Shown one piece after another: positions 11,519-37,821 of a stretch of 40,756 nucleotides of DNA (the stretch's first letter is position 1; every line of letters starts with the position of its first letter). Source of the stretch: Pelomyxa schiedti (Eukaryota; Protista; Evosea); NCBI GenBank assembly GCA_020536535.1, contig JAHLWZ010000938.1, forward strand, positions 1 through 40,756, given 5' to 3'. The notes below the pieces were generated by a model, which saw only the letters and a program-made list of their open reading frames with translations, ran no database searches and was not told the DNA's origin. The position numbers and the translations under genes were made by a program.

Positions 11519-13045
11519 ATGTTACACGCAAGAACCTTGTTCACAGCGGAAGAATGCACCCCCACAACTACCCACAAGAGCATTGAACAAGGCTTGCCAG
11601 GCATGGGTCGTGTTGGCAGGCTGGTCGTCGTTGCCCCTCACGTAGTGTCGTCGACTACGACGTGCGTCACGTCACCCCCGTGCGCAACCGCGACGACGGT
11701 GTCGAGGTCAGCCACCGTGACGACCGTGACGTCGACAGCGACCACGTCGACGACTACGGTGACCACCACGACCACCGGCGGCCCGACGATGAGGGACCAA
11801 GTTGGCGCCCTGGCGATGGGGACGCACCCCAGGTGCGGCGCCTCGTGCGCGCTTCCGTTGACAATGATGAACAGCGCTGGTGGGGGTGGCGCAGGGGCAG
11901 ACGGGGGCGATTATGGGATTCTGGTTGTCAGGCTGGTGTGGTCGTGGCTGTGGTGCCGGGCGAGGTTCTTCTGCTTGTGCTTTTCTGGGTGCTATGCATC
12001 TGGATACCCACACACACAGGGGCCATCATGGGTGGTCACATTTGGCGTGTCGACGGTGCTGCTGACGCTGACTCACGAAATGAGGTGGTGGGCACAGGGA
12101 AGGGACCGGCGACTGTTTGCTGCCTGCCCGCACTATCTGGTGGTCTACGATGGCGGGCGCGGACTTTACTACTTGCGGGACACGAGGACTGGGAAGAGGA
12201 TGCCTGTGGAGGACGGAATGAAGCACCCTCTTCCTACACTTGTACATCATCAAACCAACGGGAAGTGGCTAGTGTACCGCCAGGTGCGGTCAAGGGAGGC
12301 CGTAGTCTATAAGCTCCCAACGACTCTGGGGGCAGAATTACCACCTACACCAATGAATCCAACTGTGGTGCAGTTTCCTTTCGACCTCGATGAGTGTAGG
12401 TTGGGTGACAATGAAGACCACCTGTGGCTTTGGTCATTTGGTGTCATGACCCGAGGCTCTCTCCCTTTATTCAGGTTGGCATTGATTGACCTTGCTCAAA
12501 CTCAGTTATTGAAAACACTTGTGGTGCTGGGTTCAGCTGCTCTGCCGTTGGATGATGACAGGGACAGTTGGATTCTGACACCCAAGCATTTTGTACTCTT
12601 TACCAAAAAGAATGGTGCTCACTTATTTGCGGTGCTATTACACGATGCCTATAGCAGAAATGTGGATCTTATTATCATTGAAGAGGGAACTGGGCACATG
12701 AAAAAAATCCCACTAGGGGGTGACAGGTTTGCCTCAATGTGGGTATCACCACTGAACGAGTCACAGTTCTCTGTGTTTGGGGTTCACAAGGACACATACG
12801 AGGTGTGGGATGCCGCTGACACAACAAGGCCGGCACGGGAAAAGAAATGCCTTCCTGGATGCACAACAACAAACCAAGCATTTGTTGAGGGAGGACTGCT
12901 GTTCCAAATGAGTGAACTCAAGAATGAAATGCACGTGACTGAGGAGTCCTCTGGTGATCACGTCATAACTTTGCAATTTTTCAGGCCTGCATTTGTTGTG
13001 CACCACCACTCCTTCCATCTCTCTAGCAACACCTTTGGTGTATAA
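11519..13045 (+). CDS. Array paralog A: intronless unknown-family protein (N-module plus probable beta-propeller); true start may be ATG 11603
   Basis: 508-codon ORF with RVGRLVVVAP, a Thr-rich linker, MRDQVGALAMGTHPRCG, LVWSWLWCRARFF, NGKWLV and FVEGGLLFQMSE..HVTEESSGDHVITLQFFRP. Confidence 0.85.
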   Translation: MLHARTLFTAEECTPTTTHKSIEQGLPGMGRVGRLVVVAPHVVSSTTTCVTSPPCATATTVSRSATVTTVTSTATTSTTTVTTTTTGGPTMRDQVGALAMGTHPRCGASCALPLTMMNSAGGGGAGADGGDYGILVVRLVWSWLWCRARFFCLCFSGCYASGYPHTQGPSWVVTFGVSTVLLTLTHEMRWWAQGRDRRLFAACPHYLVVYDGGRGLYYLRDTRTGKRMPVEDGMKHPLPTLVHHQTNGKWLVYRQVRSREAVVYKLPTTLGAELPPTPMNPTVVQFPFDLDECRLGDNEDHLWLWSFGVMTRGSLPLFRLALIDLAQTQLLKTLVVLGSAALPLDDDRDSWILTPKHFVLFTKKNGAHLFAVLLHDAYSRNVDLIIIEEGTGHMKKIPLGGDRFASMWVSPLNESQFSVFGVHKDTYEVWDAADTTRPAREKKCLPGCTTTNQAFVEGGLLFQMSELKNEMHVTEESSGDHVITLQFFRPAFVVHHHSFHLSSNTFGV

Positions 13046-13308
13046 TACACCGGTTTGTAACTGGGTTTAATAGTGATACTTCTCCTTTCTTCTCTGAGGA
13101 ATTGAATAATGTGGGTTGTTGGGACGGAACTAAAATAAATAAACACTTTGCTTCAGTACGAACGTATTCGTCACTCCCTTCAGGACAGCCACTCACACCT
13201 CACGAGCATGGGTTTGTGGGGTCACTTGGTTAGTCAGTAGAATCCACTCAGGTAACAAAAAACCTGAAAGACAAAGGCGTGAACGAAGGGAGAAAAAAAA
13301 AAAGCAAG

Positions 13309-13640
13309 TCACATACCAATCACCAGTGAGGTCCATTCCGCTTTTGTAAATGTAGAACACAGGTGACGATCTGAACACGGACTTGAGGGTGGCACCCTTG
13401 GTGTTGGCTGTTGTGCTCGCCGGAACGAATATCTAAATATTATTAATATATCAGCTCTTTTTGAATATCTGATGATGAAAGTTCGGAAATCCCGGCACAC
13501 CTGTGGGAAGTGATTGTTTGTTTGAACGTAAAAGGTCCGGAAAGCCGGAAGAGGTCTTTTGGATCACAGAACGAGAATATGAACAGGCACAGATAGTGCG
13601 GAAGTATTTTAAAAACTTTCTGAAAAGCTGCAACAACCAC
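13309..13640 (-). pseudogene. F-box domain gene remnant (or gene with a non-canonical donor) embedded in the paralog array
   Basis: FKILPHYLCLFIFSFCDPKDLFRLS plus VCRDFRTFII (after acceptor cccacag at 13501) fits the F-box consensus LPxxxxxxIFSFLxxxDLxxxxxVCxxW/F. No in-phase GT donor and no clear start. Confidence 0.45.
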
Positions 13641-14040
13641 CCATCTCCGTGCATATTTCCTGTGGTGGTGTGGTCCCTCGTGTTGGTGGTTTTAGCCACA
13701 CTTTCGAGGAAATATCTGGGGTGTGTGAGTGGGGTATGTTCTGATCAGGAAATCATAGGGATTGGGTTGGGAGAGTTTGCTCACCAAAAATCCACACCTC
13801 GTTGAGCTTCTTGCCATTCGACATTCCACCTGTGTGCGGTAATAGCGTACTCCTCGGTTGGAAATTGACCCGATGTGTACCGTGTCAACAAACAAGTCTG
13901 CCCAGTTGGTTCATGTTAATGGTGTGATAGTAACACACGCACCTTTCCAACGCCACTGTCCCCCAAGACAAGGAGCCTAATGGGCCGCATGGTTTGGAAA
14001 CCCAACAGTTATTTTCTTGTGATGGGATTCAGAGAAGGAA

Positions 14041-15312
14041 ATGCGGCGGAGAGTGGCCAAAGTAGTGGTGGTTGTGTTGGGCGCGTCGGCCTCTTCGTCG
14101 TCGACTAGGGGAACTGTTGGGCACCCTGTCGTGGCGATGACGATGCGGGACCAAGTTGGGGCACTGGCGATGGGGACCCGCTGCGGCGGCGGCGGAGGGG
14201 ATTATGGGATGATGACTCTGGTTGTGAAGCTGGTGTGGGAGTGGCTGTGGTGCCGGTCGAGGTTCTTCTGCGTTGCAGTTGCAACTGCCGATTACGATAA
14301 ATCGTGGATGGTCACGTTCGGGGTGTCGATGGTGCTGCTGACACTGACACATGAAATGAGGTGGTGGACACAGAGGATGAGCGGGCCAAAGGCACTGCAG
14401 GGAGCCACACAGCACCACCTGCTGGTCCATGATGTGCGGGGGTTCTTCCTGCTGCAGGACACAGTGACTGGTCAGAGGGTGGCTGTGCCTGGCAGGGTCA
14501 GGAGTCAGAGGGGGATGTCTGCCACCAATGGGAAGTGGCTGGTGTGCTGCCGCCCAAGGAATCTTGTAGTGTTTAAGCTCCCAGTGAAACGGGTGTTGGG
14601 GGAAAGCCAGTTGAACGAACCAACAGTTGTGGAAATGCCACTTGACATTGGAAGGCGTTGCTGCATTCAGTTTGTGGGCACCTGTGCTGACCACTTGTTG
14701 ATTTGGTCCCTTGGGATTTTGCACAATACTCCCTGTGTTACCAAGTTGGTGTTGGTTGATGTTGCACAGACCAATTCATCCAAAGCACTGGTTGTGCTGA
14801 GTTCAGTTGCTCTTCAAGTCGGTCACTTTCACCTGACAAACTGGATCCTGTCATCCCAGCATTTTTCCGTTTTCACCAAAACAAGGAAGGATGGAGCTCA
14901 CTCTTTTGTGGTGCTGAGGACTTCAACTCATGGCACTGATGTAGCACTCCTGGGGTCCGAGGAGCGAACTGACCAGCACAAGCAGACTCCACTGCAGTTC
15001 GAAAAATTCAGATGTGTGTCACCACTGAGTGAGTCACAGTTCTGTGTGTTTAGCTCGCGGGGACTCACATACAGTGTGTGGGATATAAACGACACAACAA
15101 AGCCAATGAAGACAGTGAAGTTCTTGCCTGGATGCATAGCCAAAGATGCCTTTGTGGAAGGAGGACTGCTGTTCCAAATGAGTGAATCCAGGAAAGAAAT
15201 GCATGTGACTGAGGAGTCCTCTGGTGATCATGTCATAACTTTGCAATTCTTCAGGCCTGCATGCATCCTGAAACATAAGTTCTCTTTTCCTCTCCCTGGG
15301 ATCTCCCCATAA
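14041..15312 (+). CDS. Array paralog B (intronless)
   Basis: 423-codon ORF with MRDQVGALAMGTRCG, LVWEWLWCRSRFF, TFGVSMVLLTLTHEMRWW, NGKWLV and the conserved C-terminal block. Confidence 0.88.
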   Translation: MRRRVAKVVVVVLGASASSSSTRGTVGHPVVAMTMRDQVGALAMGTRCGGGGGDYGMMTLVVKLVWEWLWCRSRFFCVAVATADYDKSWMVTFGVSMVLLTLTHEMRWWTQRMSGPKALQGATQHHLLVHDVRGFFLLQDTVTGQRVAVPGRVRSQRGMSATNGKWLVCCRPRNLVVFKLPVKRVLGESQLNEPTVVEMPLDIGRRCCIQFVGTCADHLLIWSLGILHNTPCVTKLVLVDVAQTNSSKALVVLSSVALQVGHFHLTNWILSSQHFSVFTKTRKDGAHSFVVLRTSTHGTDVALLGSEERTDQHKQTPLQFEKFRCVSPLSESQFCVFSSRGLTYSVWDINDTTKPMKTVKFLPGCIAKDAFVEGGLLFQMSESRKEMHVTEESSGDHVITLQFFRPACILKHKFSFPLPGISP

Positions 15313-15372
15313 CGCACACAGTTGATGTCTTGAATTTCAAAACACAAATTTTCGAGGAAGCATCAAACCGAA

Positions 15373-16782
15373 ATGCAAGAACAACAAGCATCAAGCGAAC
15401 AGTTGTTCGTCAGTAGTAGTCCCCATGCAACAACAGCAGTTGCATCCACCAAACATGTTGGTCCGAAAAAAGTGCTTCGCACAGGAAGGCTCGTTGTTGC
15501 ACTGGCACCCTCCGGGCGACGAGTGACGTCACCACGAGCAACTGCCACCACAGGCGCGGCCACAACAACTCCCCCGGGCCCCCCGCCGATGATGAGGGAC
15601 CAAGTTGGCGCCATGGCGATGGGGGCGCACCCGAGGTGCGGGGCGGCGTGCCCACTGTTGAAACTCGCGGGCGGCAGGTGGGATTGTGGGATGTCGATTC
15701 TGGTGGCGCGGCTGGTGTGGGAGTGGCTGTGGTGCCGGTCGAGGTTCTTCTGTGTCGCGGTGGTTGCTTCAGATTATGGGAAACCTTGGATGACCAGCTC
15801 GTGGGTTGTCACGTTCGGGGTGTCGATGGTGCTGCTGACACTGACACACGAAATGAGGTGGTGGGCGCAGAGGATGACCGGCCCACAGTCAGTGTTTGGT
15901 GTCAACCAGCGCCAGGTGATTGTGTATGACGTGCGTGGGTTCTTCCTGCTGCAGGACACAGTGACTGGTCAGAGGGTGAGTCTGCCTGTCAGGGTCAGGC
16001 CCCCAGGGCGCACTGGCACAAACGGGAAGTGGCTGGTGTGCTGCCACCCAAGGGAACTTGTTGTCTTTGAGCTCCCAGTGAAGCGGGTGTTGGGGGAAGG
16101 TCAGTTACACCAGCCAACAGTTGTGCCACTTCACATAGAAGGGCGTTTCAGCATTCAGTTTGTGCACACTTGTGCTGACCACTTGTTGATTTGGTTATTT
16201 GAATCATCGCAGCGGCTTTTGCCCAATTTAGTCAAGCTGTTGCTGATTGACCTTGCCCAAACCAATTCATCGAAATCTTTGGTGGTGCTGAGTTCAACTG
16301 CTCTGCAATTTGGTGACTTGGGCCTGACTACCCGTACTTTGGGAACGCAAGAATTTTCTGTTTTGACAAAGAAGAATGGGGCTCGATCATTTGTGGTGCT
16401 GAGAACCCCAAGCTTCCCACGTGGAAATGCTGCACTCATTGCTTTCGAGGAAAGAACTGGGCACCTCCAACACACCCCACTGAAGGAAAGCATCTGTCGT
16501 GCCTCACAGCTGAACCAGTCACAATTCTGTGTGTTTGCAGCTCACAAGGACACATACGATGTGTGGGATGTAAATGACACAACAAAGCCTCTGAAGACAG
16601 TGAGGTGCCAACCTGGTTTGGTAGCAAGTCACAACTTTGTTGAAGGCGGACTGCTGTTCCAAATGGGTGGATCCAGAAGAGCAATGCGAGTGACTGAGGA
16701 GTCCTCTGGTGATCACATCCTCACTTTGCAATTCGTCAGGCCTGTCTACACCCTAAACCAGAAGTTCTCCTTTCTTCTCTGA
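15373..16782 (+). CDS. Array paralog C (intronless; closest to B)
   Basis: 469-codon ORF. Shares DVRGFFLLQDTVTGQRV and LPVKRVLGE with B, plus the family motifs. Confidence 0.88.
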   Translation: MQEQQASSEQLFVSSSPHATTAVASTKHVGPKKVLRTGRLVVALAPSGRRVTSPRATATTGAATTTPPGPPPMMRDQVGAMAMGAHPRCGAACPLLKLAGGRWDCGMSILVARLVWEWLWCRSRFFCVAVVASDYGKPWMTSSWVVTFGVSMVLLTLTHEMRWWAQRMTGPQSVFGVNQRQVIVYDVRGFFLLQDTVTGQRVSLPVRVRPPGRTGTNGKWLVCCHPRELVVFELPVKRVLGEGQLHQPTVVPLHIEGRFSIQFVHTCADHLLIWLFESSQRLLPNLVKLLLIDLAQTNSSKSLVVLSSTALQFGDLGLTTRTLGTQEFSVLTKKNGARSFVVLRTPSFPRGNAALIAFEERTGHLQHTPLKESICRASQLNQSQFCVFAAHKDTYDVWDVNDTTKPLKTVRCQPGLVASHNFVEGGLLFQMGGSRRAMRVTEESSGDHILTLQFVRPVYTLNQKFSFLL

Positions 16783-16913
16783 GAAAAAAAACCAACTTGA
16801 AAGTGATGACATCTCATGCCCTAACCCTAACTTAAGACAACACATGCCTTCTTTTCCGTTCCAAATTCTCTAATAGAAAGAATTCATAAGAATCATGTGG
16901 GGTTCAAAGTGGA

Positions 16914-18260
16914 TCAGGAGAGAAGGAAACAGAAATTAGAAACCACGGCAGTTTCTTTGAAAAAAGCCAAAGTGATGACGTGATCACCAGAGGACTCCTC
17001 AGTCACGTGCATTTCTTTTGTGGATTCACTCATTTGGAACAACAGACCCCCTTCAACAAATGCTCTGTTTGTTGTGCATCCAGGAAGGCATTTCATTGTC
17101 CTTGCAGGCCTTGTTGTGTCAGTGGCATCCCACACCTCGTACGTGTCCTTGTGTGATCCAAAGAGACAGAACTGTGTCTGGCTCAGTGGTGATATGCGAC
17201 GTGGGAACACTCGTGGCATTACTTGCGCTTGTTTCGTGTGGGCAGTTCCCTCCTCGATTGTAATGAAGGCGGGATAGTTGCCTGACAATGCAACACAGTC
17301 AACAAACACATGAGCGCCGCACTGTTTGGTCAAAACAGAATAATCTGGAAACTCAAATACCGGAAACAGCTCAAGTTGGGGTTCAGTCACACTCAACACC
17401 ACCAATTCTTTCGATGAATTGGTTTGCGCAAGGTCAATCAACATCAACTTCAAAGACCGAACGTGGAAGTTGAGTCCAGAAACTGTGAATGAGAACAGCA
17501 TGCGGTCTTCACAACTGTTGTCCAAGTAAATTTGACAGTCATCACTGAGGGGAAGTGGCACAACAGTTGGCTTCTTGGCACTTGGTGAAAATCTTTCCCC
17601 AAATGCGCACCTCGTTGGCAGTTCAACGACAGCCAGGTTCTTCAGGGATTTATCGCGGCACACCAACCACTTCCCATTGACCTGACAACCAAACGCAGAC
17701 CACTCTCCTCCAAGCAACAACGTCCTCTGGCCAGTCACCACGTCCTGGATGAAAAAGCAACAACCTCGGCGGAAGTATTTCCCCACCAAGTAGTGCCGGT
17801 TCGCACCCACAAGTACCTCCGTTCTCCTCCTTTCCGCCCACCACCTCACCTCGTGCGTCAGTGACAGCAGCGCCGTCGACACCCCGAACGTCACCAGCAC
17901 TGGGTGCTTGTCGCCGACGAATAACTTGAGGCAGTAGAACCTCGACCGGCACCACAGCCACTCCCACACCAGCCTCACAACCAGCATCCCATAACCCCCT
18001 CCGCCGCCACCACCACTCATAGCGCCCCTTCGCAGGGCGCACGACCCCGCGGCCCCGCCGCCGCACCTGGGGTGGGCGCCCATCGCCAGGGCGCCAACTT
18101 GGTCCCTCATCGACGAGGTGGTGGTCGTTGCTGGTGGTGGGGCCACGACGACGGCGCGTCCAACGTGACGGTGACGTGCCGTTACTGCGGCATTTTTGAT
18201 CGAACCTGATTGTAGTGTTGTTGTGGTGTCGTAGTCACTTGTTGTGTTGCTCCCATGCAT
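16914..18260 (-). CDS. Array paralog D (intronless, inverted)
   Basis: 448-codon ORF with HVGRAVVVAP, MRDQVGALAMGAHPRCG, LVWEWLWCRSRFY, NGKWLV and HVTEESSGDHVITL. Confidence 0.88.
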   Translation of the reverse strand: MHGSNTTSDYDTTTTLQSGSIKNAAVTARHRHVGRAVVVAPPPATTTTSSMRDQVGALAMGAHPRCGGGAAGSCALRRGAMSGGGGGGGYGMLVVRLVWEWLWCRSRFYCLKLFVGDKHPVLVTFGVSTALLSLTHEVRWWAERRRTEVLVGANRHYLVGKYFRRGCCFFIQDVVTGQRTLLLGGEWSAFGCQVNGKWLVCRDKSLKNLAVVELPTRCAFGERFSPSAKKPTVVPLPLSDDCQIYLDNSCEDRMLFSFTVSGLNFHVRSLKLMLIDLAQTNSSKELVVLSVTEPQLELFPVFEFPDYSVLTKQCGAHVFVDCVALSGNYPAFITIEEGTAHTKQAQVMPRVFPRRISPLSQTQFCLFGSHKDTYEVWDATDTTRPARTMKCLPGCTTNRAFVEGGLLFQMSESTKEMHVTEESSGDHVITLAFFKETAVVSNFCFLLS

Positions 18261-18355
18261 TTGAGGAATAATTTCTTTCGCATCAGGTCACCAGCTTTGA
18301 AGCTAATTCGCCCTGCCGTTCGATCGGCAACATCAATGCTGTCGGCACGTAAAAC

Positions 18356-19184
18356 ATGTGGCATTGCCAAGCCTGGTGGTCGTGGCTGCGGTGCCGGTCG
18401 AGGTTCTTCTTTGTGCCCCTTTGTGCTGGGAACAGGTCATGGGTGGTCACTTTCGGAGTGTTGATGGTGCTGCTGACACTGTCACACGAAATGAGGTGGT
18501 GGGCGCAGGCGGGGAACTGGCCCAGGGCGTCACTGCTGGGGGGCCAACCCGCACTAGCGGCGTGGATTTTGTGAGCTGCGGGACACGGTGACTGGGAGGA
18601 GGATGGCTGTGCCTGACAGGGTCAGGAGGCCAAAGGGTTGCTATGCCACCAACGGGAAGTCACAACTGTTGGATGGCACAACTGACCTTCCCCCAACACC
18701 CTCATCACTGGGAGCTCGAAAACAAAGGTGTCAAAGACATAGGCCTTCCCTTCGGGGGATTGTCAGGGTTCCAAGATTTTTGTGTTTTGACCAAAACAAA
18801 GATGGATGGGTCTCACTCGTTTGTGGTGCTCAGAGTGACCATTTTCAGCAGTGATGCTGCTCTCTTGGAGTTTGATGAGGGAACGGGTGGGTGTCTACAT
18901 TTCAGTTTGAAGACTACAGCTGGGTGTCACCACTGAACCAGTCACAGTTCTGTGTTTTTGTTCCAGACAAAGACTCATTCAATGTGTGGGACATCAATGA
19001 CACGACATTGCCAATCAGGTCAGTGCACTGCCTGCCAGGATGCATGACAGACCGCAACGAATTTGTTGAAGGAGGACTGCTGTTCCAAATGAGTATCTCC
19101 AAACAAGAAATGCATGTAATCGAGGAGTCCTCGGGGAGTTATGTAATCTCCATCGTAGTCGTCTTCACCCACATCACTACTTGA
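18356..19184 (+). pseudogene. Array pseudogene E (B-like; 5'-truncated, internal deletions, frameshifts)
   Basis: Family motifs are split over several frames: WSWLRCRSRFF/LLTLSHEMRWW, RMAVPDRVRR..ATNGK, TKTKMDGSHSFVVLR, VSPLNQSQFCVF..FVEGGLLFQMS..EESSG. The MRDQ module is missing. Confidence 0.85.
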
Positions 19185-19277
19185 GCAGACGTATGTATTC
19201 ATCATGAAGTAAGTAAGAAGGCATTAATGTTCCCAGAAATTATAGATAACAGTGCCACTCTGTTGCCCTCTAGCTGA

Positions 19278-20570
19278 CTACATAGACCACAAAATTGACG
19301 GGTAAAAGACCCAAGGGAACTCAACAGGAACAGTGAAAACACCAAAGTGGAACCCACTCAGCCCATCATGAAGTGACACTTTGAGTGACTTCTCTTTGGC
19401 ACCTCTGGTGCTGAGTCCAGTTGATGCAATAAGGCCTGACTGATTGCTTGGGCAGCACCATGTGCAAGGGACACAGAATGAAGGCTTGGTGGGGTCACTT
19501 CCTTCAGTGTCGTACACTCTGAATCTGTGTGAATCCGCTGAAATAACAAAAGCACGGCCCTTGCTGATTGGATGAACCATGTGATCTTTTGGAAATGCCA
19601 GACGCCGGTGCTGCAATTCATCCACCAGGAAATACACTGAACTGCCGAAGTGCAAGGTGCACATGGAACCATCAGAGAGCCACATGACTCCCTTTGGGGT
19701 GACTTCGTGGTGCATGATTTTTGTTTGAACCACCAACCCCTGTGCCTGGAAGCTTGCATCCAAGTCCACAAAAGTCACGGCACCACAGGTCCAGCCAAGG
19801 TCCATCAGTATGTCATGGCTCTCTGGTGACAAGTCGATGTCTTTCAAATCCAAACTCGTTTGGAAGCACACCCCCGGACCCTCTGGAATTCCTCCAGCAA
19901 CCCTCCAAATGCAAAGCTCACCATGCTTGCTCCCTGAGCACGCCAACCACTTCCTGTTTGCCCGCGCACTGTAGCCGAATGACAGCGACGGCGACGACCA
20001 ACACACAGCACCGGACTCTGAATCCAGGACAGAGTGTTCCCACAGCACCCAATCACTCGGCGATGTTTTAGAGAACAGGACCTTGTTGGGGCCGGTCATG
20101 CAGTCCTGCATCAGCATCGTGGAAGTGAACGCAGAGACGCTGACCACGCCCAGGGTTGGTGACACACTCACGCACAGGTATCGGAACCTCCTGATGTCTC
20201 TGGTGTGGATCTGGGTGGAATCCCTCAGGGGTAGCCTGAACACAGCGTCCCTGACAGGCCTGAGGACCCACTCCTCGGCCCACATTCTCACCAGTGAGAG
20301 TGATTGGCACCACTCCACCATGGCTGGTGATGGTTTCAGGGGGTATGACGAGGGTGGCGATGACGACGCTACAGCGCCCTCGTGGTCTGAGCTATTACAT
20401 GGATGACGGCACACCCGCTTTGCAATGATGGGAGCACAACACACGGCAACGACTTGCGACTTGGCGGTCGTGGCACCAATGTTGATCTTTTCTGTTGCCT
20501 TTGGTGTTGGGTGTGCCCTTTCAAATACATCTTTAGAGCGCCAGCTGTTGTGTTGTTGTGACTGTCCCAT
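19278..20570 (-). CDS. Array paralog F, distant subfamily (intronless)
   Basis: 430-codon ORF with colinear degenerate motifs: AKSQVVAV, WAEEWVL, ANRKWLAC, FVDLDASFQAQGLVV (cf. LIDLAQTNSSKELVV), VYDTEGSDPTKP (cf. VWDVNDTTKP), LHDGLSGFHFGVF. Confidence 0.75.
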   Translation of the reverse strand: MGQSQQHNSWRSKDVFERAHPTPKATEKINIGATTAKSQVVAVCCAPIIAKRVCRHPCNSSDHEGAVASSSPPSSYPLKPSPAMVEWCQSLSLVRMWAEEWVLRPVRDAVFRLPLRDSTQIHTRDIRRFRYLCVSVSPTLGVVSVSAFTSTMLMQDCMTGPNKVLFSKTSPSDWVLWEHSVLDSESGAVCWSSPSLSFGYSARANRKWLACSGSKHGELCIWRVAGGIPEGPGVCFQTSLDLKDIDLSPESHDILMDLGWTCGAVTFVDLDASFQAQGLVVQTKIMHHEVTPKGVMWLSDGSMCTLHFGSSVYFLVDELQHRRLAFPKDHMVHPISKGRAFVISADSHRFRVYDTEGSDPTKPSFCVPCTWCCPSNQSGLIASTGLSTRGAKEKSLKVSLHDGLSGFHFGVFTVPVEFPWVFYPSILWSM

Positions 20571-20603
20571 AGCGGGTAATTACCCCCAACGGTCTTCCTG
20601 GAA

Positions 20604-20933
20604 GTGTTGAGCTCCATCAACGCAACGATGCTGCTGTCGCTGTCAGTGCCACCACCAACCAACGCTGCGGAACAGTTTTGTGCGCTTATCACATCGTCGC
20701 ACCCGCCACGTGTGCTCCCTTGCGCCCCTCGTGGGCCACACATTCGTCCTGGGCCTCCTCCGCCGCGTTCGTCCTGGGCCAGCAAAGGCGACGACGCGCC
20801 GGAAAAAAAAGCGAAAGGAGCCTCGCTGGCCATCACGCGGATCGAGGCATTCACTTGTTATGGAAGATTGAGTGTGCTGCCGATTGTCGTTCACTCTCCG
20901 TGTCAATTTCGGTTCTGTGTTGGGTGTTGGTGA
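20604..20933 (+). pseudogene. Probable decayed gene G beginning with the family N-module
   Basis: AAEQFCALITSSHP resembles ARQQVLALVMASHNRCG / MRDQVGALAMGTHPRCG. The downstream sequence is broken over frames, with Cys-pair fragments to ~21350. Confidence 0.3.
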
Positions 20934-21377
20934 GGGGGAGTGGGGGAGACAATTGATTTCTGATTTCACTGCGCACAGTGCACAGTGTAAGCTTGGGTTC
21001 CTGTGAGTAACGCACAAGAGAACCTTCAGTTCCCAGCAATAGACACACAGTTTGAGTGAATTTTTTCCACTCCAACACAAGGTGCGCCAAGGAATTGGAA
21101 AATCCTGCTGTAAATAGTATAAATTACTTGTCGATAGGTGCCAACGGTGCACTTTGTGTTTTAGAAGAGGACTTTTCACGTGACCCGAAGTGGTACACTG
21201 GCGCAGATGTGTGAAATGCGGGTGGGCGCAGTTCGAAGCTGCACCGACCCAAAAAATGGGGCACTTTGAACCACAGGAAAATTGCTCTGTAAAACACAAA
21301 GTGCGCCACCGTGAACCAGTTATGTCCTGTTTGCGGCAAGGCTGAGTGACAGGAAACTACTTGTGATTGATACCTCA

Positions 21378-22952
21378 TCAGGCCTTGTTGCCACCAGAGA
21401 GTGGGAAAGAGTGCGTATGTATCAGGATTGAGATAGGCCTGAAAAATAGCAAAGTGATGACATGATCACCAGAGAACTCCTCTGTCACGTGCATTTCTTT
21501 CATGGATTCACTCATTTGGAACAGAAATCCTCCTTCCACAAAGGCAGCTTTTTGGGCGTCTCTTCCGGACATTGTGCAACTGGGCAAGTAATTCCCGATC
21601 CTCACTGGCTTTCTGGGGTTGTTTACATCCCACACTTCGTACTTATGCTTGTGAAACCCAAAAACACAGTACTCTGACTGGCTCACTGGTGATACAGATG
21701 GGAATTCTGCTTGTAGGCTTTTTTGGGTCAGTTGCAGGCGCCCAGTTCCTTCCTCAATGATAATGACAGAAGCTTGGTTGAACAAAGGCTGATGAGCCAT
21801 TGCTGTGATAAATGAGTGAGTACCACAGTGTTTTGTCAACACAGAGTAGTTTAGACCTATCAAGGGCGCACAGTGATAGGGGTTGAGGTCTCGCCATTGA
21901 GGAGCAGTTGAACTCAACACAACCAGTTTTTTCAGAGAATAGGTTTGTGCAATGTCCACGAGCACCAACTGTAAAAAATTCGCAAAAACACGAGAGAAGC
22001 ATAGCAAGAGACGGTCCTCACATGTGTGGTCCCACTGAGGGGAGCATCGGCCATTGCCGAGTGGCACCACAACAGCCAGAGCACCTGTAGAACAGAGTCT
22101 TTGACACTTTGGAGCCAATGGGAGCCTAACAACCGACAGCTCGCTCCTAGACGTGGACTGGCCACAGAACACAAACCACTTCCCGTTGACGAGGCACGAT
22201 CCGTTCCAGCAGTCCCTCACCGGCAGCCGCGTCCTCTCCCCGGTCGATGTGTCCTGGACGTAGAAGCAGCGGCGCGACCTGGCCACGACGCTGTGCTGGT
22301 TGGAACCCACCAGCTGCTGCCACGCCCTCGCGCGCGCCCACCACCTCAGCCCGTGCGTCAGTGTCAGCAGCACTGTTGACACCCCGAAGTCGCACAGCAG
22401 GGAGCACCCGGGGTGCACGTGCCACTGCAGATAGAAGAACCTCGACCGGCACCACAGCCACGACCACACCAGCCTCACAACCAAAATCCCATAATCCCCC
22501 CCGCTGCCGCTGCTGGCATTGGCCAGTGGGCACGCGGCGCCGCACCTGGGGTGCGTGCCCATCGCGAGAGCCCCAACTTGGTCCCTCATCATCATCACCA
22601 TCGGCGGTCTCCGGGTCGTCGGAGTCTCTGCTGCCGTCGTGGTTTGCCTGGTGGTGCCGACCGGGGCAGTTGCCGATGACGTCACGGTTGTGTGGGGAGC
22701 CACCACGACAACTCTTCCGACGCGGGCGTGGCGGCGGTCCGCCCGTTGTTGCTGCTGATTGTTATTTTGCGTTTTCGTTGTTTTTATGTTTCCGGGAATG
22801 CAAGGAAGGGGTATTGTGTGGAAACTGATGAGCGGATACTCACTCACCAATGAAAGAAAGCGATGAATTCGATTGGCAAAGGGTTTTATTATTTGCTTTT
22901 GTGCTTGTTGTTTGTCGATGTGATACAGAAAGGACTTACTCTTCTTGGGCAT
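21378..22952 (-). CDS. Array paralog H (intronless ORF; first ATG 22952, real start may be further downstream)
   Basis: HARVGRVVVVAP, MRDQVGALAMGTHPRCG, LVWSWLWCRSRFF, NGKWFV, FVEGGFLFQMSESMKEMHVTEEFSGDHVITL. Confidence 0.85.
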   Translation of the reverse strand: MPKKSKSFLYHIDKQQAQKQIIKPFANRIHRFLSLVSEYPLISFHTIPLPCIPGNIKTTKTQNNNQQQQRADRRHARVGRVVVVAPHTTVTSSATAPVGTTRQTTTAAETPTTRRPPMVMMMRDQVGALAMGTHPRCGAACPLANASSGSGGDYGILVVRLVWSWLWCRSRFFYLQWHVHPGCSLLCDFGVSTVLLTLTHGLRWWARARAWQQLVGSNQHSVVARSRRCFYVQDTSTGERTRLPVRDCWNGSCLVNGKWFVFCGQSTSRSELSVVRLPLAPKCQRLCSTGALAVVVPLGNGRCSPQWDHTCEDRLLLCFSRVFANFLQLVLVDIAQTYSLKKLVVLSSTAPQWRDLNPYHCAPLIGLNYSVLTKHCGTHSFITAMAHQPLFNQASVIIIEEGTGRLQLTQKSLQAEFPSVSPVSQSEYCVFGFHKHKYEVWDVNNPRKPVRIGNYLPSCTMSGRDAQKAAFVEGGFLFQMSESMKEMHVTEEFSGDHVITLLFFRPISILIHTHSFPLSGGNKA

Positions 22953-22960
22953 GGTGAGCT

Positions 22961-24089
22961 TCAGGTAAAACCAGTGACAGAGAAGCACAGGATGCTGTCG
23001 GGAAAACTGATGGTTCCAATAAGCCCACCATGGGGATCTGTGACATCTATCTTCCTGTCGAATTCTCTGTGAAAGAGGAATCCTGATTCAGCTGTAACCC
23101 CTGCGATGCTTGGCCTGCCGGGAACTACCCTCAGTGGCGCTGCAGTGTTGTTGCAGTCCCACAATTCGGCACTGGAATTGCTCTTGCAGATGCAAAACGT
23201 GGAGGAGCTAAGCTTGGACACCCTGTATGTCACTGTGGATATTGACCTTGGTGGTGCACACCCACCCTCGCATAACTCAAACACAGTCCCAGAAGAATAG
23301 CCCGATGCCACTTCCACATACACAACACGTTCACCACTGCACCTCCTCATCACAACTGCTGATGAAAACCTGCTCCAAGCCGGGAGCACCCACCTGGTCA
23401 TGTGCATAACCCCAAGCTCCCGAGTTCTGTATGTTTCACACAAGTCAACCTGCACAAGAATCAGCGTGTCACCACTGCCGTTGAACACGAACATGACGTG
23501 ATCAGCCTCACCACGCACGCCCTGCACGATTCCTGCACAGGACCATGCATCCTCGGGCAGGAAATTGCCCAGCCTGACTTCGGCGTGTTCAGCCGTCAAC
23601 AAGTTGTTCATAGTCAATTCGCCGCTCCCGGTGCAATGTACCAGCCACTTTCTTCCAACATAAATCTCGGCCAATTCGTTGCCCTTGGGCATCAGAACCC
23701 TGTCAGTGCCCGTTTCGACGTGGACGAGGTCGAAGCGCGGGTCGATCAGGCGTTGGGTAGTGTCTGGTCACCACGTGGTCTGGGTCGGAGGCACCTATTC
23801 CAGTCTTGTCACGAATGCAACTTATGGGATCGGCAGGTCTCCTCGTCACCGAGTTGAGGGCACACGACAATGAGAACCTGAGGAACATTGTGCCTCCAGG
23901 CTGGCCGACGAGAACGCCAAACGACACCTCGGTGTACCTCCCGAGGCACCAGTCCCACAATGGCAACGTCGCCAGTGGCGGGAGAGACACAAAGTGACGC
24001 GCGGGGCTCGCCGCACCACACCGATTGTGGGATGCCATCACCAAAGCAAGAACCTGCTGCCGTGCGCAGTGAAGTGTCACGCTGATCAT
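22961..24089 (-). pseudogene. Array paralog I, distant subfamily, interrupted by one frameshift near 23770-23740 (pseudogene or assembly error)
   Basis: 5' frame ARQQVLALVMASHNRCGAASPAR...LWDWCL. 3' frame FDLVHVETG, GRKWLVHC, QVDLCETYRTRELGV, LWDCNNTAAPLRVV, AESGFLF, VTDPHGG. A single +1 shift joins them. Confidence 0.75.
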
Positions 24090-24165
24090 CACTCAACACC
24101 AAATCCAATCCTCCCGTTTCTGTTTTCATGATGCCAACTTGGACCACAATCAATCCCCCGCGAGG

Positions 24166-30622: not shown

Positions 30623-33600
30623 TTATGAGCCAGGATGTGGTGTTCTGGGTTCGGCTTGTAGTGATAAGTCAAAGCACTGGGTTTCTGATAGAGATTTCAC
30701 GTTGTTGAGCATTTTGATTATGCTGGCGGTGGTGTCAGTTGGAATTAATTAATTAGGTGGTGATTGTTTTGGGGGGTAGTTACCTATCTACTCGGGTGAA
30801 GTTGTAGGGCTTCTGTTGGTAGTTCTGAACCTCTTGAATCACTGCAGCTACCATCTTGAACTTGGCGAAATTAACATACCCTCCTTCTAATGAATCGGGG
30901 TTTCCTTCCTCTGTGAAGTGGTTTGCATTAATTTGATCGGAGGTTCTGAAAGTAATATACCAATGAATGTAAGGTCACTGAGGTAGACACCCAGGTATGG
31001 AATGCACGGAGGGTTTGCTTTTCGTATGGTTTCACGATAGTAGGAGAAGCTACCGTGAGGCGAAGTTAGCTGTTGCACAATACCCAGAGTCTTCAGCATA
31101 AGCTTATCTGCATTCACCTGATTTTTGTCAGTTCCTCCATCACAGGGAAAAAAGGGTACCTCCGCCCAGGTATTCTTTAGTCTCGTAATAGAAGCAGCCC
31201 CAAGGCCTGCAGACACTTCGAAAATCGCATTCATGTTATTCAGTTTTAACAGTTCCTGAAAGATATGAGTGAACATAGAAATAGGAAACAAAATACGTCC
31301 AAGAGCCGGACGAATCTTTTGATGATTATAACTCTTTTCTTGATATTCTGTTCCCTGACGATTGTCGTGGTGACCCAGTTGCTGATCTTCGTGTTGGTAA
31401 GTTAAAGAAGGAAGATTTTCAAAGGCATAGTACGGCGTTGAACTTCCGTATCATAACAAGGAGGTTTGGACTCCTTTCATCTTTATCTTTTTTGGACCAG
31501 CCAAGTGAAAGGAATTCCTTTGGTTGTATACTCTGCGCACACACTCAGTGTGATGGTTATACTTTCTAAATTTACATAAAGACAATCAAATTCCATCAAA
31601 CTGATTTGTCGGGCTAATTCCGTGGCATCCAAATCATCCAGTGTAATAAGTAGCTTGGGTACATTTGCCGGCAAAATAGGAGGTGGAGGTGGCTCACTGA
31701 AAATGAATGCTCGTGGTCCTCTCTGTTTAGCATAAACATGAGTTGGTTTATTCAGTGGTTTAGTACTGCTCCAGCAAGTTTGTTGTCCAGTTTCGTTTTG
31801 AGAATTCCAATTTCCTTCTTAAATGCATTTGCCTCAATGAAATTTTGATACGTGTCCAGAAGCACATCATCTCCCTCAAAATCGTGGAAAAAATTGTCAC
31901 ACCACCTCTTTAACACGTTGACGATTCTTTTTTTAATTTAGAAAAAAAACGAATATTACAGATGGAATACCTAAGCCGTGTCTTAGTTTTAAGGACCATG
32001 CTTGATTGCTGGTTCTGAAAGGTGTGAGAAATGACACAAAGGTTTTTACCAAACTGTGTCATTTTGTTCTTCAGGAGATGGATCGTTTTCGACAAATCTT
32101 GAGGTTGATCAGAAAATCCTCAAAAGAAAAGTAAAAACCCACGCTTTAAGAAGCATATCGAAAACTGTATTCGCATCAGTAAAGCTCCTATACGTGAGTA
32201 GAAATACGTCCATGTACACGGTTGCTGGAAAGATGAGAAACATAGGAAATTGATGAGAGAATACCATCAATGTTGCTCAGTGTGAAAAGCTGTTCTATCA
32301 GCTTGGGAACGGTCCCTAATCCCGGTCAGTATGCGTTTGTGCAGAGAAAAACGGACCTCCTTTTAGCTCTATAACATCTGGGTTCCTGAGCTCCGGTCCA
32401 TAAAGAAGCCCTTCAGTTGATGGCTGTCAAAAACGTAAGAAAAATATCTACTTGAGCCTTACACACTGTGATATCTGCTTCAAGAAGTGATACTGGAGGT
32501 GGTGCCGGAGCGGGAGTCGGAGTGACAATAGGAGATTCGGATTTCTGTGTGGAAGCCACAGAAAAAGAAGGTGGAGGTGGAGGCATGAACACGTCAGAGA
32601 GTTTCATTGGAGACGGCTTGAGTGGATCGACTTTCGGTGCCTCTACTTTTGGGGGCTCTGCTTTTGGTAACGGCTTGAAGGAGGCGCTTTTTACATCTGA
32701 TTTCGGGGTCTCTGTTTTCGGACTATCAAGAGCTGGCAATATTGGTGTTGTATCATTCTTCTGTAATAAGGTTTGTCAAAGTTAACGGCAATCAATATGC
32801 GGTACCAAATCAGATGTCTTGGTAGATAAGTATTCTTCATGTAGGTTAACAATATGTTTCTATACCATCGTTAGGGAAAATTTCCCAAGTTTACATACCA
32901 AGGAGAAAAGACCCCCAAGAAGAGAAAATAATTCCATCCGTAGAATTATATTTTCCTGCGCTACAGAGGATGTATCATTGGATGACCGTTTACAATCAAC
33001 AGCAATGCATGACTGTGAAATTGCAGTTGACAATTCAGGATATTTGGTAAGAGCACTGTTGGTAACGTAAATGAATGCTTTTATTATTTTTTTTACTCAC
33101 TAGGATTTTGATGAAGAAAATTCATCCTTCAATTTCTGAACGTCTGTTGCCAATTTCTTGTTTTCTTCTTGTAGTTCAGTACTGTCTTGTCGTGCCTTAG
33201 TTACAGATTAACGGCAAGAAGGAATTCACCTTTTGGGCTAGGAGAGTTCAAGAATGAGTGCCACTTGGATAGCCATTCATCACCATCTACGAACTGTGCA
33301 TCACTTCTGAAGTTCTATTAATCCATTAAAATAATAAGTGCTTGGAGCAGACGATGTTCTTGGCCTTGCAGGTTGTGCAGCTTGAATTTGTGCTGCCGCT
33401 GCAGCCGCGGATCCAAATCTTGGTTTAGCAAGAGGCTTTCCTTTTCCTGGTGGCGTTCCTGTAGCTGGAGGTGCTCCCATTGCCATTGCACATGCCACCA
33501 TTGGTGTTACAGTAGAGGATATAGCGTTTGGTGGGGAAGATGTTCGAATTGGAGCTGGGTGATTTAAACTTAGAATGGAGGATAATTGAACTAGGCTACT

Positions 33601-35060
33601 TTTCAAAATGCCTTTCTTTAGTAAGTCATCAGCAGAAGGTCTTCGCCTCAGAAAAGGTTCTAGTACCTTTGTTTGGGTGGCCGACAATGTAAAGTGAGCC
33701 TAAAAATGGGTACTTGGTGCACAGCATCAGATTTTGAATCAAAACTGGTTGCACTGTCAATAGACTCGTGCTGCCTCTCCTCAAAAGTGTGAAATTGTGT
33801 GTAATCGTGGAAATCTAGGAGTCTAAGGCTGAAAAGTGCATGGGAACACGCTACCTAGGGATGAGCAGCGCTTAAGGGGAGTAGCCGTTTGAGATGGGGT
33901 TGGTGCTGCAGATGACGGTGGTGCTCCTGTAACAGAAAATTAGTTCAATTTTAGGTGCCTTTAAAAGACACCTGGCTTGGTCTTCATTGATGGAAGGTTG
34001 AACGTTGGTTGAGACATTGAAACGGCAAGCCTTCCAACAGGCCTTTGTCCCGGAGAGTTTGCCTGATAAAGTTAGCTCAGGCTGTTTCAAGGTGAACAGT
34101 ACTGATTTTGGTGGGGGAGCAGTAATAGTCCTGACGGGTGGTGTTGCACGACCGTTTGGAGGTGTAGAAGCGAAATGTTGAGGAGTAGTAGGTGAGTTGG
34201 AAGCTGGTGTAGCAGTTCCATTTTTCTTTTGTGGTGGAACAGCTGGAGGTGCATGTCTAGGAGGAGGGGATGCCACTTCAGTCTCCTGTGGACTTTCTGA
34301 GGTTGATTTCTCTGGCGGGGCAGGTGCCCCAGAAGGTGGAATTGATGCCGGAGTAGCAGTGGAAACGCTCGGGGTGGTTGCAGGAGTGTGGGAAAGTGGG
34401 GGAGAGGGTGATTTTCCCGGTGGTATAGCTGCTTGTGTTTGTTGGGTTGCTGCGGATGTTTGGGGTGTTGACTGTGGAGTTGATTGCGGACTTGTTGGAG
34501 TTGGTGCTGTAGTGGGTGGGTTTGAAGGTGAGGATGGTGTTGTGGGAGGAGCTCCTGAATTAAGCTGGGCAAGAGCCCCCAAGCACCGGAAAACCTGTGG
34601 TATATTAATCCCAGAGAGGAGTGATTCCTAATGTACTTGAGGAATATTGTATTCGTTGTATAAATCTGTGACAGTAAATAAATCTTTTGGATCAACACCC
34701 AATTTCTTGCAGCCATTAATGAAATTTTCAATATTTGTCTGAGGACAGTGAAAACCAACACCTCGCGAATCAAACGCAATAAGAAAACCTTGTGATAAAG
34801 AACGCCTGGTTTAGGTGGCACTACTATTTGCGGTGACAAAGTATTGATTGCACTGAATGAAAAAATAAGACTGGGGATGCACTGCTGCAATTCACATACT
34901 TGGATAGAATGACACCAGACCGCAGTCCTTTGGCAATGTTTCCTGTGTTTAATTGGGTCGCTGATGTATCCCCAGGAAGGGTCTTCTGTATCCACTCAAG
35001 AGCCTGTTCTGTAACATAATTGAGAAATTAAGGACCCGTACACAACATAGTACTGGCCAT
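30623..35060 (-). CDS. Ras guanine-nucleotide exchange factor: CH domain, Pro-rich region, RPEL motif, REM and CDC25 domains
   Basis: N-terminal MAKQALEWIQKTL..GLRSGVILSK..IENFINGCKKLGVDPKDLFTVTDLY (CH). LEPFLRRRPSADDLLKKGIL (RPEL). GGTVPKLIEQL..FLLTYRSF (REM). [51 protein letters not shown] and LSLQAEPR (CDC25). Confidence 0.88.
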
Positions 35061-35382
35061 TAAAGTTCATTAAACAAGAAAATTAATACTTCGAAAAAAA
35101 AAAAAAAAAGGCAATAGGAACAAAACTAAATAGCCATGGCAACCCATGTAACAAGAAGCGAAAAGGAAAAATAAAAAATAAAAAAATAAAAAAAACCCAC
35201 CGGCGGTCATCTCCTTCGGAAGTGTTTTTTCTTTTGTGCGTTGTTTTTTGATATCCAAACGGTGGAAGTTTGTTAAAGATTTTTGTGCCTTAAAAAAGGC
35301 GGTGATGTGATGAACGGGGGTGTTGAATTTGTGGCCGAAGGGGCGAGCCGTGGTTGGTTCTCAGCAACATAGCTCTATTCAC

Positions 35383-37821
35383 TCACAAAAAGAGGTTCTG
35401 CCTCTCGTGAATCGGGGAGCGGCAGAAGGGGCACTTCTTGACTACAGAAGCACACTGTGTAGGTATACATGAGTTAGTTGTTGCGGTTTTTGTTGTTGGG
35501 TGTTTGTTTACCTCAAAGCAGAGAACGCCATGGCCACAGGGGTGAAGGCGGACGTTGCGGGGCCGCTCGTCGCATACGATGCACTGTATGGTGTCGCTTG
35601 CGATGCCGGATGAAGCCTGAGTGCCAAGAGACGAGAGCGCGAGGGGGCACCCTATCGCGGAGGCGGCAGAGGGGCTTGGTGGGTCGAAGAGGCAAGAGGA
35701 TGAAAGGGACTGGGAGCTCGACGTGAGGACTAGCATGGTGAGCGCTTGTTGGGCGACCGGAAGCGCGCTGGAGAGCTCGCTATGGACTTCCGGGCAAATC
35801 ATGAACGAGGCATCTCCTGACAGAGCACCCTGCAGCATGCGCTTCTGTTTGCACTCCGCCTTGAGCTGATTGTGTGAACACACAGCGTCATCGAGTTCCT
35901 TTTGCAGAGAATCGCCGCGGCTGCACTCGTCGGAGTATTCTTTTGACAGAGTTTCGTACTTTTCCAGCAGATTGGTACACTCCTTCAACGTGATTTGTCT
36001 CAAGCTACTGAGGGTATCTCTGACCTCCCGCAACGAAAACGGCGGTGCAGTGAAGATTGAACCACACTGGTGATCAACATGAATAGGCTTGACCATCTCA
36101 GAATTCCCATCTATACTCATGTAAGCGATAGTCAACAACAATCTGGTAATTACCTGGTGACGCTGAAGTAATACTACTTTCCTGTGGTTTGGTTCTCATA
36201 AAGGTTTGTGTCAATGTAAGAATGTGGCTTGAGGCTTGCTGTATCTCTAGCTTGCTACTGTTTACTGTGAGTGACTTGCCAAGCAGCTCGTCACATCGCA
36301 TTTCTGACTGGGTGCGTTCCTTCATCAGTGCGTCTTTCAGTTTGGTCATACAGAGCAAGTGCTTTTCCAGTTCCGCTGTCCTTTCTTTGGCTGGTTTCAG
36401 ACTCTGTTTCAATTGCTCAAGGGAATCCTCATGCAGTTTCACCTCTTCCGCAATGCTATTTAGCTGTTCTTTCACGCTTGTTGCCAAATTATAAACTGAA
36501 TTGAGTTCTGCAAGCGCTGGACCTGCTCCACTGAATTTGAGTACCTCTCCCTCCGTTTGGCTTTCTTTTTGCTCGATAACTTGTTTTATCTGATTTGCTT
36601 CTTGTTGGGCAGCATCAAGTTTTTCCTGCAGTTGTACTTTCGCTTCTTTCTCTTGTGTAAGTTTATCTTTCAATTCCCTCAATTCCTATTTAACGTGATT
36701 AAAGAAGGCTCTCTGAAAATGAAACCTTGTGAGATAAATAGCTTGACTGTCCCATGTGATGAAAAGCTCCACCGGTTCCTTTAAAGTCACTATTCTGTAA
36801 AACCCCAAAGAGCTTCTCACCGCCAAGTGTAGCAGTACCCTCCCCAGTACCACCTAGCACAGTACCGCCTAGCGTTCCCCTTCCTTCTGTAAAGTCGCCT
36901 ACGAACTCATCTCCATTTGGCCACGTTCTGGTTCCGTAACTCATATTCCCGGTCACCCATTGTCCCCTAAAGGATGATCCATCATGATGCCAGGTCTTCG
37001 TGCCTGAGCCATGTTCGCGCCCAGCTTCCCACTCACCTTCGTACTTGGTTCCACTGGTCCAAACACGTGTTCCCTTGCCAGACATCTTTCCTTCCTTCCA
37101 GCTCCCTGTATAGCTCCCGCCATATTCGTACAGCTTCTGCCCTTTCCCACTTTTTTGACCATACGCGAACTGACCCACATATACCCAACCTTTAGTTGGG
37201 CTTGTGTAGGTCCCATAACCATGCATCACCCCCCTGCGCCACTGACCCTCATACTCTGTTACTGTGGCATGTACCCCCGTCTGCTTCCTCCTCATAACAC
37301 CCCAACCGTGCCTCAAATCCTCTCCCTTCACCGCATCCCACAACCACTCTCCATTGTACACGCTGCCATCGGCGTATGTCAGCATACCACTTTTCCGGTG
37401 TCCATCTCTCCAGAGACCATCATATCTCCTTCCATCCGCGTAGGTCTCCACGCCCCACCCATCCCGTTTATCCTGGCACCACTCTCCATCATATTTTGAA
37501 CCTTCCGCAAACCAGGAGTACACTCCGCGCCCGTCCTTCTTGCCTTCTCTCCACTGCCCGTCGTAATTATCACCAGTATCCCATGTGTACTTGCCGGCGC
37601 CATCCCTCAGTCCTTGCACCATCCTTCCCGTGTATGTTCCACTACTCTCCCCTTCACCGCATCTCCTCAATGTAACATTCTCCACAGACTCGTCGGATAT
37701 GGAAGTCCCCTCTGTATGTGCATTCACGGTGATCGGGCGTCTCTGCGTGAATAGAGGTAGCATTTACAGCGCCGCTTGTTAAGCAATTAATATTAATTAC
37801 ACAAGTGAGATCTGACGACAT
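35383..37821 (-). CDS. MORN-repeat, coiled-coil, C-terminal RING (C3HC4_3-type) protein, putative E3 ligase
   Basis: About ten MORN repeats (YxGxWxxGxxxGxGxxxWxxG), a heptad-rich middle region and CIVCDERPRNVRLHPCGHGVLCFE|CASVVKKCPFCRSPI. Exon 1 MSSDLTC starts at 37821. Confidence 0.88.

Follow-up and report, generated by a model that had tools for sequence, protein, structure and literature searches.

A very large superfamily of intron-free genes in Pelomyxa schiedti predicted to encode beta-propellers with one conserved and one hypervariable face

The DNA analysed here is a stretch of 40,756 nucleotides (nt), hereafter the window, which a search of the organism's own genome places as contig C938 of the Pelomyxa schiedti assembly (52.4 Mb in 5337 contigs). 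In a 12.5-kb part of the window, intron-free genes of one very large superfamily stand in a tandem cluster, most of them belonging to a subfamily (type 1) marked by an N-terminal HPRCG box. The encoded proteins are predicted to fold as seven-bladed beta-propellers in which, judged from the strand order of a structure model, one face is conserved and the other hypervariable, and the family is estimated at several hundred genes, or roughly 2% of the predicted proteins of the organism. The interpretation that we favour, with about even confidence, is that of a modular repertoire of soluble intracellular binding proteins. The genome paper of P. schiedti counts 19,876 predicted proteins, with 7.43 introns per gene, and mentions neither the HPRCG-box propeller family nor propellers or F-boxes (PMC8887013).

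Results

A predicted propeller with two unlike faces

The structure model was produced with AlphaFold2 from the open reading frame (ORF) of copy C, one of the intact genes of the array (Table 1), and an alignment of 45 full-length type-1 paralogs (5 window copies and 40 loci from other contigs), the same set from which the type-1 profile was built. The mean predicted local distance difference test score (pLDDT) of the model is 80.6 and its predicted template modelling score (pTM) is 0.76. Residues 1-53 are disordered, three helices (74-85, 94-100 and 106-121) form the HPRCG box with a pLDDT of 50-65 before residue 110, and the model is confident from residue 110 onward, with 28 beta-strands over residues 123-468, mostly at pLDDT 80-97. 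The 28 strands resolve into seven four-stranded blades, and the body is thus predicted to be a seven-bladed beta-propeller (7 x 4 strands), in agreement with the propeller body that a first-pass annotation of this DNA had proposed from the letters alone. Foldseek returned at least 500 propellers from the PDB (best E 5e-9; G-beta and others), and VIA-align gave a flat list of seven-bladed propellers with Z of 13-15, a root-mean-square deviation of 4-6 Å and 6-14% identity over ~270-310 residues. A shape search of the ESM Atlas recovered bacterial YncE, YVTN and lactonase-type propellers, with NHL and arylesterase propellers among the nearest, and a feature search of the same resource gave only generic Hira and Mcl1 propellers, below 0.9, for the body and no usable match for the N-terminal box. 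These structural matches establish the fold of the model and nothing more specific.

Column entropy and length variation were calculated over the 45 paralogs for each strand and inter-strand loop of the model. The 14 odd-numbered loops have a mean entropy of 2.97 bits and a length standard deviation of 1.84 residues, against 1.48 bits and 0.57 residues for the 13 even-numbered loops (Mann-Whitney p = 6e-5 for entropy and 6e-4 for length variation), and the strands, at a mean of 1.94 bits, lie above the even-numbered loops. Each blade carries a conserved loop of fixed length in which Asp, Glu, Thr, Ser, Gly and Asn are abundant. Because antiparallel four-stranded blades put successive loops on opposite faces, the modelled propeller shows one face that is hypervariable and indel-rich and another that is highly conserved, an assignment made from strand order. 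The entry to strand 1 and the exit from strand 28 both lie on the even side of the propeller, so that the topology before the first strand and after the last would put both the HPRCG box and the C-terminal tail on the conserved side.

The sequence anchors picked out in the first-pass annotation are conserved columns of the family and nearly all fall in strands or even-numbered loops: NGKW in loop 8, the AQT block in loop 14, EEGTG in loop 18, the VWD...DT.KP block in strand 22 and loop 22, GG in loop 24 and EESSG in loop 26. The same annotation had pictured a propeller with variable loops, and variation does sit in loops; it is limited to one face, the loops of the other being more conserved than the strands.

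The N-terminal tail and box

Four parts can be distinguished in the proteins, namely a basic, Thr-rich, disordered tail with a motif, the HPRCG box (a conserved helix-loop-helix of ~50 residues), the propeller and a conserved C-terminal tail. The family signature, Q..AL..G.H.RCG ... W.W followed by the propeller blocks, is found in copies A, B, C, D and H and is broken in copy I. The Met of the MRDQ anchor is not the start of the protein, which the alignment puts upstream, as Ala replaces this Met in many paralogs and a short conserved G-[KR]-x-V-x-V-A-P-type motif is present further upstream in 34 of the 45, including the tails of A, C, D and H (e.g., 15481-15513). This motif looks like a linear docking motif, and the spacer between it and the HPRCG box is 21-64 residues long and 32% Thr.

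Two identities were considered for the box. That of an F-box is rejected by sequence and unsupported by fold. At least 147 canonical F-box-like matches occur in the P. schiedti genome, none of them within the HPRCG-box family, Pfam models of the F-box (PF00646 and PF12937) have no match at E<=10 in the 45 members, and hhalign of the box against an alignment of ten P. schiedti F-boxes gives a probability of 0.2%. A profile of the N-terminal part has no match among PDB sequences and, when modelled alone, this part reaches a pLDDT of 72.7 with a pTM of only 0.31 and has no PDB fold match at E<=0.001. As a portable module the box was sought among its own genomic matches. The 12 weak matches sampled in long ORFs all carry the family propeller, and the 16 sampled in short ORFs are broken copies (truncated, frameshifted, or cut by a gap or contig end), with no foreign domain joined to the box in any of these 28 loci. 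Within this sample the box always comes with the propeller and so does not behave as a portable module, unlike the F-box, BTB and SOCS boxes.

Size, range and relatives of the superfamily

Searched against 50%-identity cluster representatives drawn from 1.84 billion proteins, the type-1 profile matches at least 372 representative proteins at E<=1e-3 and 297 at E<=1e-10, from which the family is put at several hundred genes. All 35 hits with visible names are P. schiedti hypothetical proteins ("hypothetical protein Pelo_..."). Pattern-plus-tblastn scans of IMG/VR viral contigs and of JGI metagenome contigs found no relative and, in the data at hand, the superfamily has so far been seen only in P. 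schiedti. Searches of the organism's own genome score the best candidates only and their counts are lower bounds: at least 97 matches from 668 candidates with ORF C and at least 150 from 1032 candidates with a model of the N-terminal box alone. Members often occur several to a contig, paralogs stand at 35-60% identity, and each of the 40 type-1 loci fetched from other contigs has an intact ORF.

No named family fits these proteins, as the first-pass annotation had anticipated. The seven window ORFs have no Pfam match at E<=1, and across the 45 members Pfam gives weak, scattered matches only. The strand blocks with WD-like ends noted earlier do not correspond to repeats that Pfam recognises, neither WD40 nor Kelch nor other repeats being found in the window ORFs or, at E<=10, in the 45 members. 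The closest Pfam match is to PF03478, which describes the propeller of the plant KIB1-4 F-box proteins (DUF295); this is the one Pfam model whose threshold is approached, by sub-threshold matches in two divergent members. These two loci, L073 and L074 on contigs C1310 and C1468, score 26.2 and 25.0 bits (E 7e-6 and 2e-5) against a curated cut-off of 27.4, one of them reaching 27.8 bits only when neighbouring pieces are summed; the divergent members on these contigs match the type-1 profile at E 1e-41 to 1e-43. Two of the 45 type-1 members reach E 0.0017 against PF03478, and neither the window copies nor ten other divergent members match it. The resemblance is best treated as a lead and not as membership. 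PDB sequence searches with ORF C, the N-terminal profile and the whole-family profile returned nothing meaningful, and a literature search on the box motifs of the family gave irrelevant matches only.

Copy F, which had been grouped with its neighbours as a paralog, stands apart from them. It is not recovered by ORF C in tblastn, and the type-1 hidden Markov model (HMM) matches it with an E of only 0.087. Its own genome search gave at least 112 matches from 290 candidates, again with the best candidates scored, and all 20 of the loci fetched from this set have intact ORFs. An alignment of 21 such sequences (type 2) yields an HMM that matches F at E 4e-150, and the type-2 profile also matches B, C and D at E 1e-6 to 1e-9. 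When the type-1 and type-2 alignments are compared, hhalign gives a probability of 97% (E 6.5e-11) over 272 propeller columns. Joined to type 1 at the profile level and with a genomic set of its own, F is thus a member of a sister subfamily with the propeller in common and a different N-terminus.

Selection

Ratios of nonsynonymous to synonymous substitution (dN/dS) were estimated by the Nei-Gojobori method for nine close pairs at 61-95% amino acid (aa) identity. For whole genes the values are 0.32-0.59. Among the propeller columns, the third that is most conserved gives 0.07-0.25, with one small-count outlier at 0.62, and the third that is most variable 0.36-0.92, never above 1 though this class was picked for its variability. 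With the columns partitioned instead by structure and pooled over eight disjoint pairs, dN/dS is 0.73 for the variable-face loops (bootstrap 95% confidence interval, CI, 0.60-0.92), 0.36 for the conserved-face loops (95% CI 0.27-0.51) and 0.46 for the strands (95% CI 0.38-0.55). These values, all below 1, show that purifying selection acts on the family genes and that they do not amount to a field of pseudogenes. The variable face is either strongly relaxed or a mixture of constrained and adaptive sites; the diversifying selection suggested earlier is not supported by these region-level values, none of which exceeds 1.

Layout of the array and its surroundings

Eight family elements are detectable in the array (A, B, C, D, E, F, H and I; Table 1). 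An earlier count of about nine paralogs was thus right about the array and one too high in number, and the six ORFs described as intact are all uninterrupted, with F not being a close paralog of A, B, C, D and H. These five are matched from end to end by the type-1 HMM, with E values between 1e-147 and 1e-164. The tandem pair B and C share 61% aa identity, and D is 85% identical in aa to L005, a paralog on contig C1673. The first ATG of H lies 12 codons into its listed ORF.

Table 1. Elements of the array and partial domain matches in its flanks (window positions), with matches to the type-1 HMM
Feature	Position	Strand	Description	Type-1 HMM match
Copy A	11519..13045	+	intact type-1 gene, 508-aa ORF; disordered Thr-rich tail, HPRCG box, propeller	11588-13024, E 2.8e-157
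Copy B	14041..15312	+	intact type-1 gene, 423 aa	14032-15294, E 2.6e-147
Copy C	15373..16782	+	intact type-1 gene, 469 aa; protein used for structure model	15466-16779, E 6.3e-164
Copy D	16914..18260	-	intact type-1 gene, 448 aa	16917-18194, E 3.2e-160
Remnant E	18374..19163	+	degraded type-1 copy, several frames, two internal deletions, 82-bp inverted piece	18374-18517, 18561-18659, 18766-18894, 18909-19154, differing frames
Copy F	19278..20570	-	intact gene, 430 aa; second, distantly related subfamily; different N-terminus	E 0.087
Spacer (earlier-proposed remnant G)	20571..21377	.	family similarity not detectable	
Copy H	21378..22988	-	intact type-1 gene; ORF listed from GTG at 22988	21396-22763, E 1e-162
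Copy I	22961..24092	-	divergent HPRCG-box copy; one frameshift between N-terminal box part and propeller part	23949-24071, E 3.1e-6; 23024-23743, E 9.2e-21; separate frames
AAA lid	1856-2341	-	partial domain match in flank open segment	
RasGEF	30890-31450	-	partial domain match in flank open segment	
RING	35386-36195	-	partial domain match in flank open segment	
MORN	36702-37763	-	partial domain match in flank open segment	

The G+C content is 0.50-0.59 over the array and 0.40-0.47 across most of the flanks. The flanks contain exon-sized open segments only, with partial domain matches, and the array therefore sits amid ordinary intron-bearing host genes; to the extent of these AAA, RasGEF, RING and MORN pieces and of the genome mean of introns per gene, the earlier description of the flanks as intron-rich is compatible with the data. 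Within the flanks, neighbouring long open segments of one strand (34090-37763, minus) contain a RING finger and five MORN repeats and may be exons of one RING-MORN gene. Directly adjoining the array, in a stretch of 65% G+C, is a 355-aa ORF (9989-11056, minus) that is largely Ser/Thr/Ala/Pro low-complexity sequence and lies outside the propeller family.

Damaged copies and turnover

Two of the elements are damaged in the manner described in the first-pass annotation. Remnant E is broken into at least four HMM pieces and, compared with L001, its counterpart on the 3.8-kb contig C1673, which is intact up to the contig end, it retains 92-96% nt identity, lacks two segments and has 18646-18727 (82 bp) inverted. 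In copy I, a three-frame reading puts the N-terminal box in one frame (~24092-23700) and the rest in another (23692-22961), from which one frameshift follows; given the single-cell amplified assembly, it may be a sequencing error. The proposed remnant G could not be substantiated, as neither subfamily HMM matches its interval at E<1 and the best tblastn alignment (E 0.004; 77 aa at 27% identity) is not significant.

A block comprising the 3' end of C together with D and E (16896-19018) is repeated on C1673 at 87-98% identity; this second copy may have arisen by segmental duplication or may belong to a haplotype that has diverged strongly. Sequence common to close paralogs covers the ORF plus some 20-400 nt of flank. 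Among the window copies, nt identity runs at 73-84% over the box, falls to 40-60% in the central part and climbs as high as 89% towards the 3' end. The C1673 paralog of D (L005:467-1723, minus) has ~18 extra residues, aligned to C 172-191, that resemble another paralog, L008, and not D, and L005 is therefore a mosaic, consistent with gene conversion or unequal exchange. The tandem pair B/C, the duplicated block, degraded E, frameshifted I and the mosaic paralog together fit birth-and-death evolution with segmental exchange, the birth-and-death part of which had been proposed before.

One further observation concerns B and C. Contigs from DNA runs contain a joint from 14367 to 16014, which leaves out the 1646 bases separating corresponding conserved positions in the two genes. 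Support for it on one side is 20 letters only, and it is most likely an assembly-graph cross-over between paralogs and not a real deletion allele.

Transcription, intron absence and annotation

Each window ORF is colinear with 40 or more paralogs in the alignment and two contigs from RNA libraries are colinear with the DNA, in line with the intronless state first read from the uninterrupted ORFs. The stretch is present in the sequencing runs of one study only, with small parts in two single-cell RNA-seq runs. Over positions 14000-19900, where RNA-library contigs were compared, a 491-nt contig matches copy B exactly at 14726-15216 and a 284-nt contig matches copy C exactly at 16407-16690. Spacers, D, E and the compared part of F have no RNA contigs except a few 24-41-nt fragments at conserved blocks, and a third contig, of 837 nt, is from another paralog. 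The two contigs lend weak support to transcription, and to the absence of introns, in the covered parts of B and C.

GenBank gene models are unreliable in the array. One (P0026; 850 aa; 16917-20570, minus) runs F and D together across E, another (P0042; 305 aa; 21381-22562, minus) has pieces of H spliced out as introns, and Pelo_14442 (P0003; 11519-13042, plus) is copy A less a short internal piece. Family counts taken from the public proteome will be distorted.

Discussion

As a modular repertoire of soluble intracellular binding proteins, the family would work through a division of labour between its parts. The constant face and the HPRCG box, perhaps with the C-terminal tail, would dock to a common partner or machinery, and through the variable face each paralog would have a ligand of its own. 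Turnover of the repertoire would come about through duplication, in tandem or of whole blocks, through exchange of segments among paralogs, and through decay. Binding by either face is something that we infer, as are the identity of the ligands and the downstream effect, and a role as substrate adaptors or as sensors of symbionts or pathogens, which the first-pass annotation had raised, is speculation.

It should be noted that several points weigh against a binding repertoire. The conserved polar loops may instead make up a site for catalysis or for a small ligand. The dN/dS of the variable face, below 1, fits relaxed constraint as well as it fits ligand-driven diversification, and the assignment of the faces is that of strand order in a predicted model only. 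The RNA evidence consists of two short contigs from single-cell libraries, which may contain DNA. Finally, the weak tail of the protein matches (E 1e-22 to 1e-3) could include a few relatives from outside Pelomyxa, as the best 150 of the 372 matches were listed.

It is possible, though unlikely, that the proteins are substrate receptors of cullin-type ubiquitin ligases, with the box as a strongly diverged F-box, BC-box or another box that binds an adaptor, and with the variable face choosing the substrates. A small N-terminal helical box ahead of a propeller, in hundreds of tandem, fast-evolving and often intron-free copies, recalls the F-box-WD40, F-box-Kelch and F-box-DUF295 proteins; the two divergent members just under the PF03478 cut-off, the two type-1 members with a marginal match and the presence of FBXW8 among the tied structural matches (Z 12.8) point the same way. 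The box itself does not, as the F-boxes that the genome does contain lie outside the family, the box aligns with them at a negligible hhalign probability, neither its profile nor its low-scoring model finds a counterpart in the PDB, and it was never seen on another domain in the loci sampled.

A bolder version of the repertoire, which we consider something of a long shot, is that the box, conserved face and C-terminal tail form an undescribed docking module for a common effector (ligase, autophagy or vesicle machinery), while the hypervariable face supplies a germline-encoded repertoire of several hundred specificities for managing the obligate bacterial and archaeal endosymbionts, prey or viruses.

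Somewhat less probable again is that the conserved face serves as an active site or binds a small ligand, as in a metal-dependent hydrolase, a lactonase-like or a lectin-like propeller, and that the variable face is simply an unconstrained surface. A fixed-length polar loop in every blade, more conserved than the strands, is what such a site might leave, and propellers of the YncE, lactonase, NHL and arylesterase kinds are among the nearest shapes in the ESM Atlas, with amine dehydrogenase and peptidase propellers among the PDB matches. The structural matches are, however, all tied and generic, no enzyme family is matched by sequence, no catalytic motif was identified, and it would be unusual for a single enzyme to have several hundred paralogs whose opposite face is rich in indels.

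A selfish or near-neutral expansion of little organismal function (retrocopy-derived, or by a mobile element or viral insertion) would account for intron-free genes in an intron-rich genome, for shared units of gene size with short flanks, and for the mixed orientation, pseudogenes and very high copy number, but is improbable given dN/dS well below 1 (~0.1 in the conserved third), intact ORFs in 60 of 60 fetched loci, paralogs that are old and not a recent burst, a window in which no terminal repeats or transposase-like neighbours were seen and ordinary intron-bearing host genes flank the array, and the lack of relatives in IMG/VR viral contigs.

About 2% of the proteins predicted for this amoeba, a free-living anaerobe with obligate endosymbionts, belong to one unnamed, unstudied family, whose members are annotated in GenBank only as hypothetical proteins, often with wrong gene models. 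As modelled, the family offers a clean natural case of a propeller with a constant and a hypervariable face, the signature expected of a modular recognition system, and its N-terminal box matches no known adaptor domain. A common partner would reveal whether eukaryotes evolved an adaptor-plus-propeller system apart from those of the F-box, BTB, SOCS and DCAF proteins. The intron-free state, amid more than seven introns per gene, bears in addition on how large families originate, be it from a retrocopy founder followed by duplication at the DNA level or otherwise.

Compared with known systems, the family has the same predicted fold as WD40 and other seven-bladed propellers (G-beta, WIPI/Atg18, IFT-A and the methylamine dehydrogenase heavy chain), but lacks WD40 and Kelch signatures and matches these proteins evenly and at low identity. 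Receptors that join an F-box to a propeller (FBXW, Kelch-F-box and the plant F-box/DUF295 proteins KIB1-4) likewise have an N-terminal helical module followed by a propeller and likewise form large, tandem families of fast turnover. They differ in their F-box, which is not detectable in the P. schiedti family by Pfam, profile-profile or fold comparison, in a box that is found on other domains, and, for the PF03478 family, in a domain on which two divergent P. schiedti members score below the curated cut-off and which the window copies do not match. Nematode F-box and MATH-BTB proteins, plant F-box proteins and the mouse oocyte Fbxw cluster evolve by birth and death in tandem, with a constant module, a variable surface and many pseudogenes. 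In those expanded families the adaptor domain is a recognised one of ubiquitin ligases and positive selection is often seen site by site, whereas the adaptor of the P. schiedti family is putative and its region-level dN/dS is below 1; in its tandem clusters, this family likewise fits a course of birth and death.

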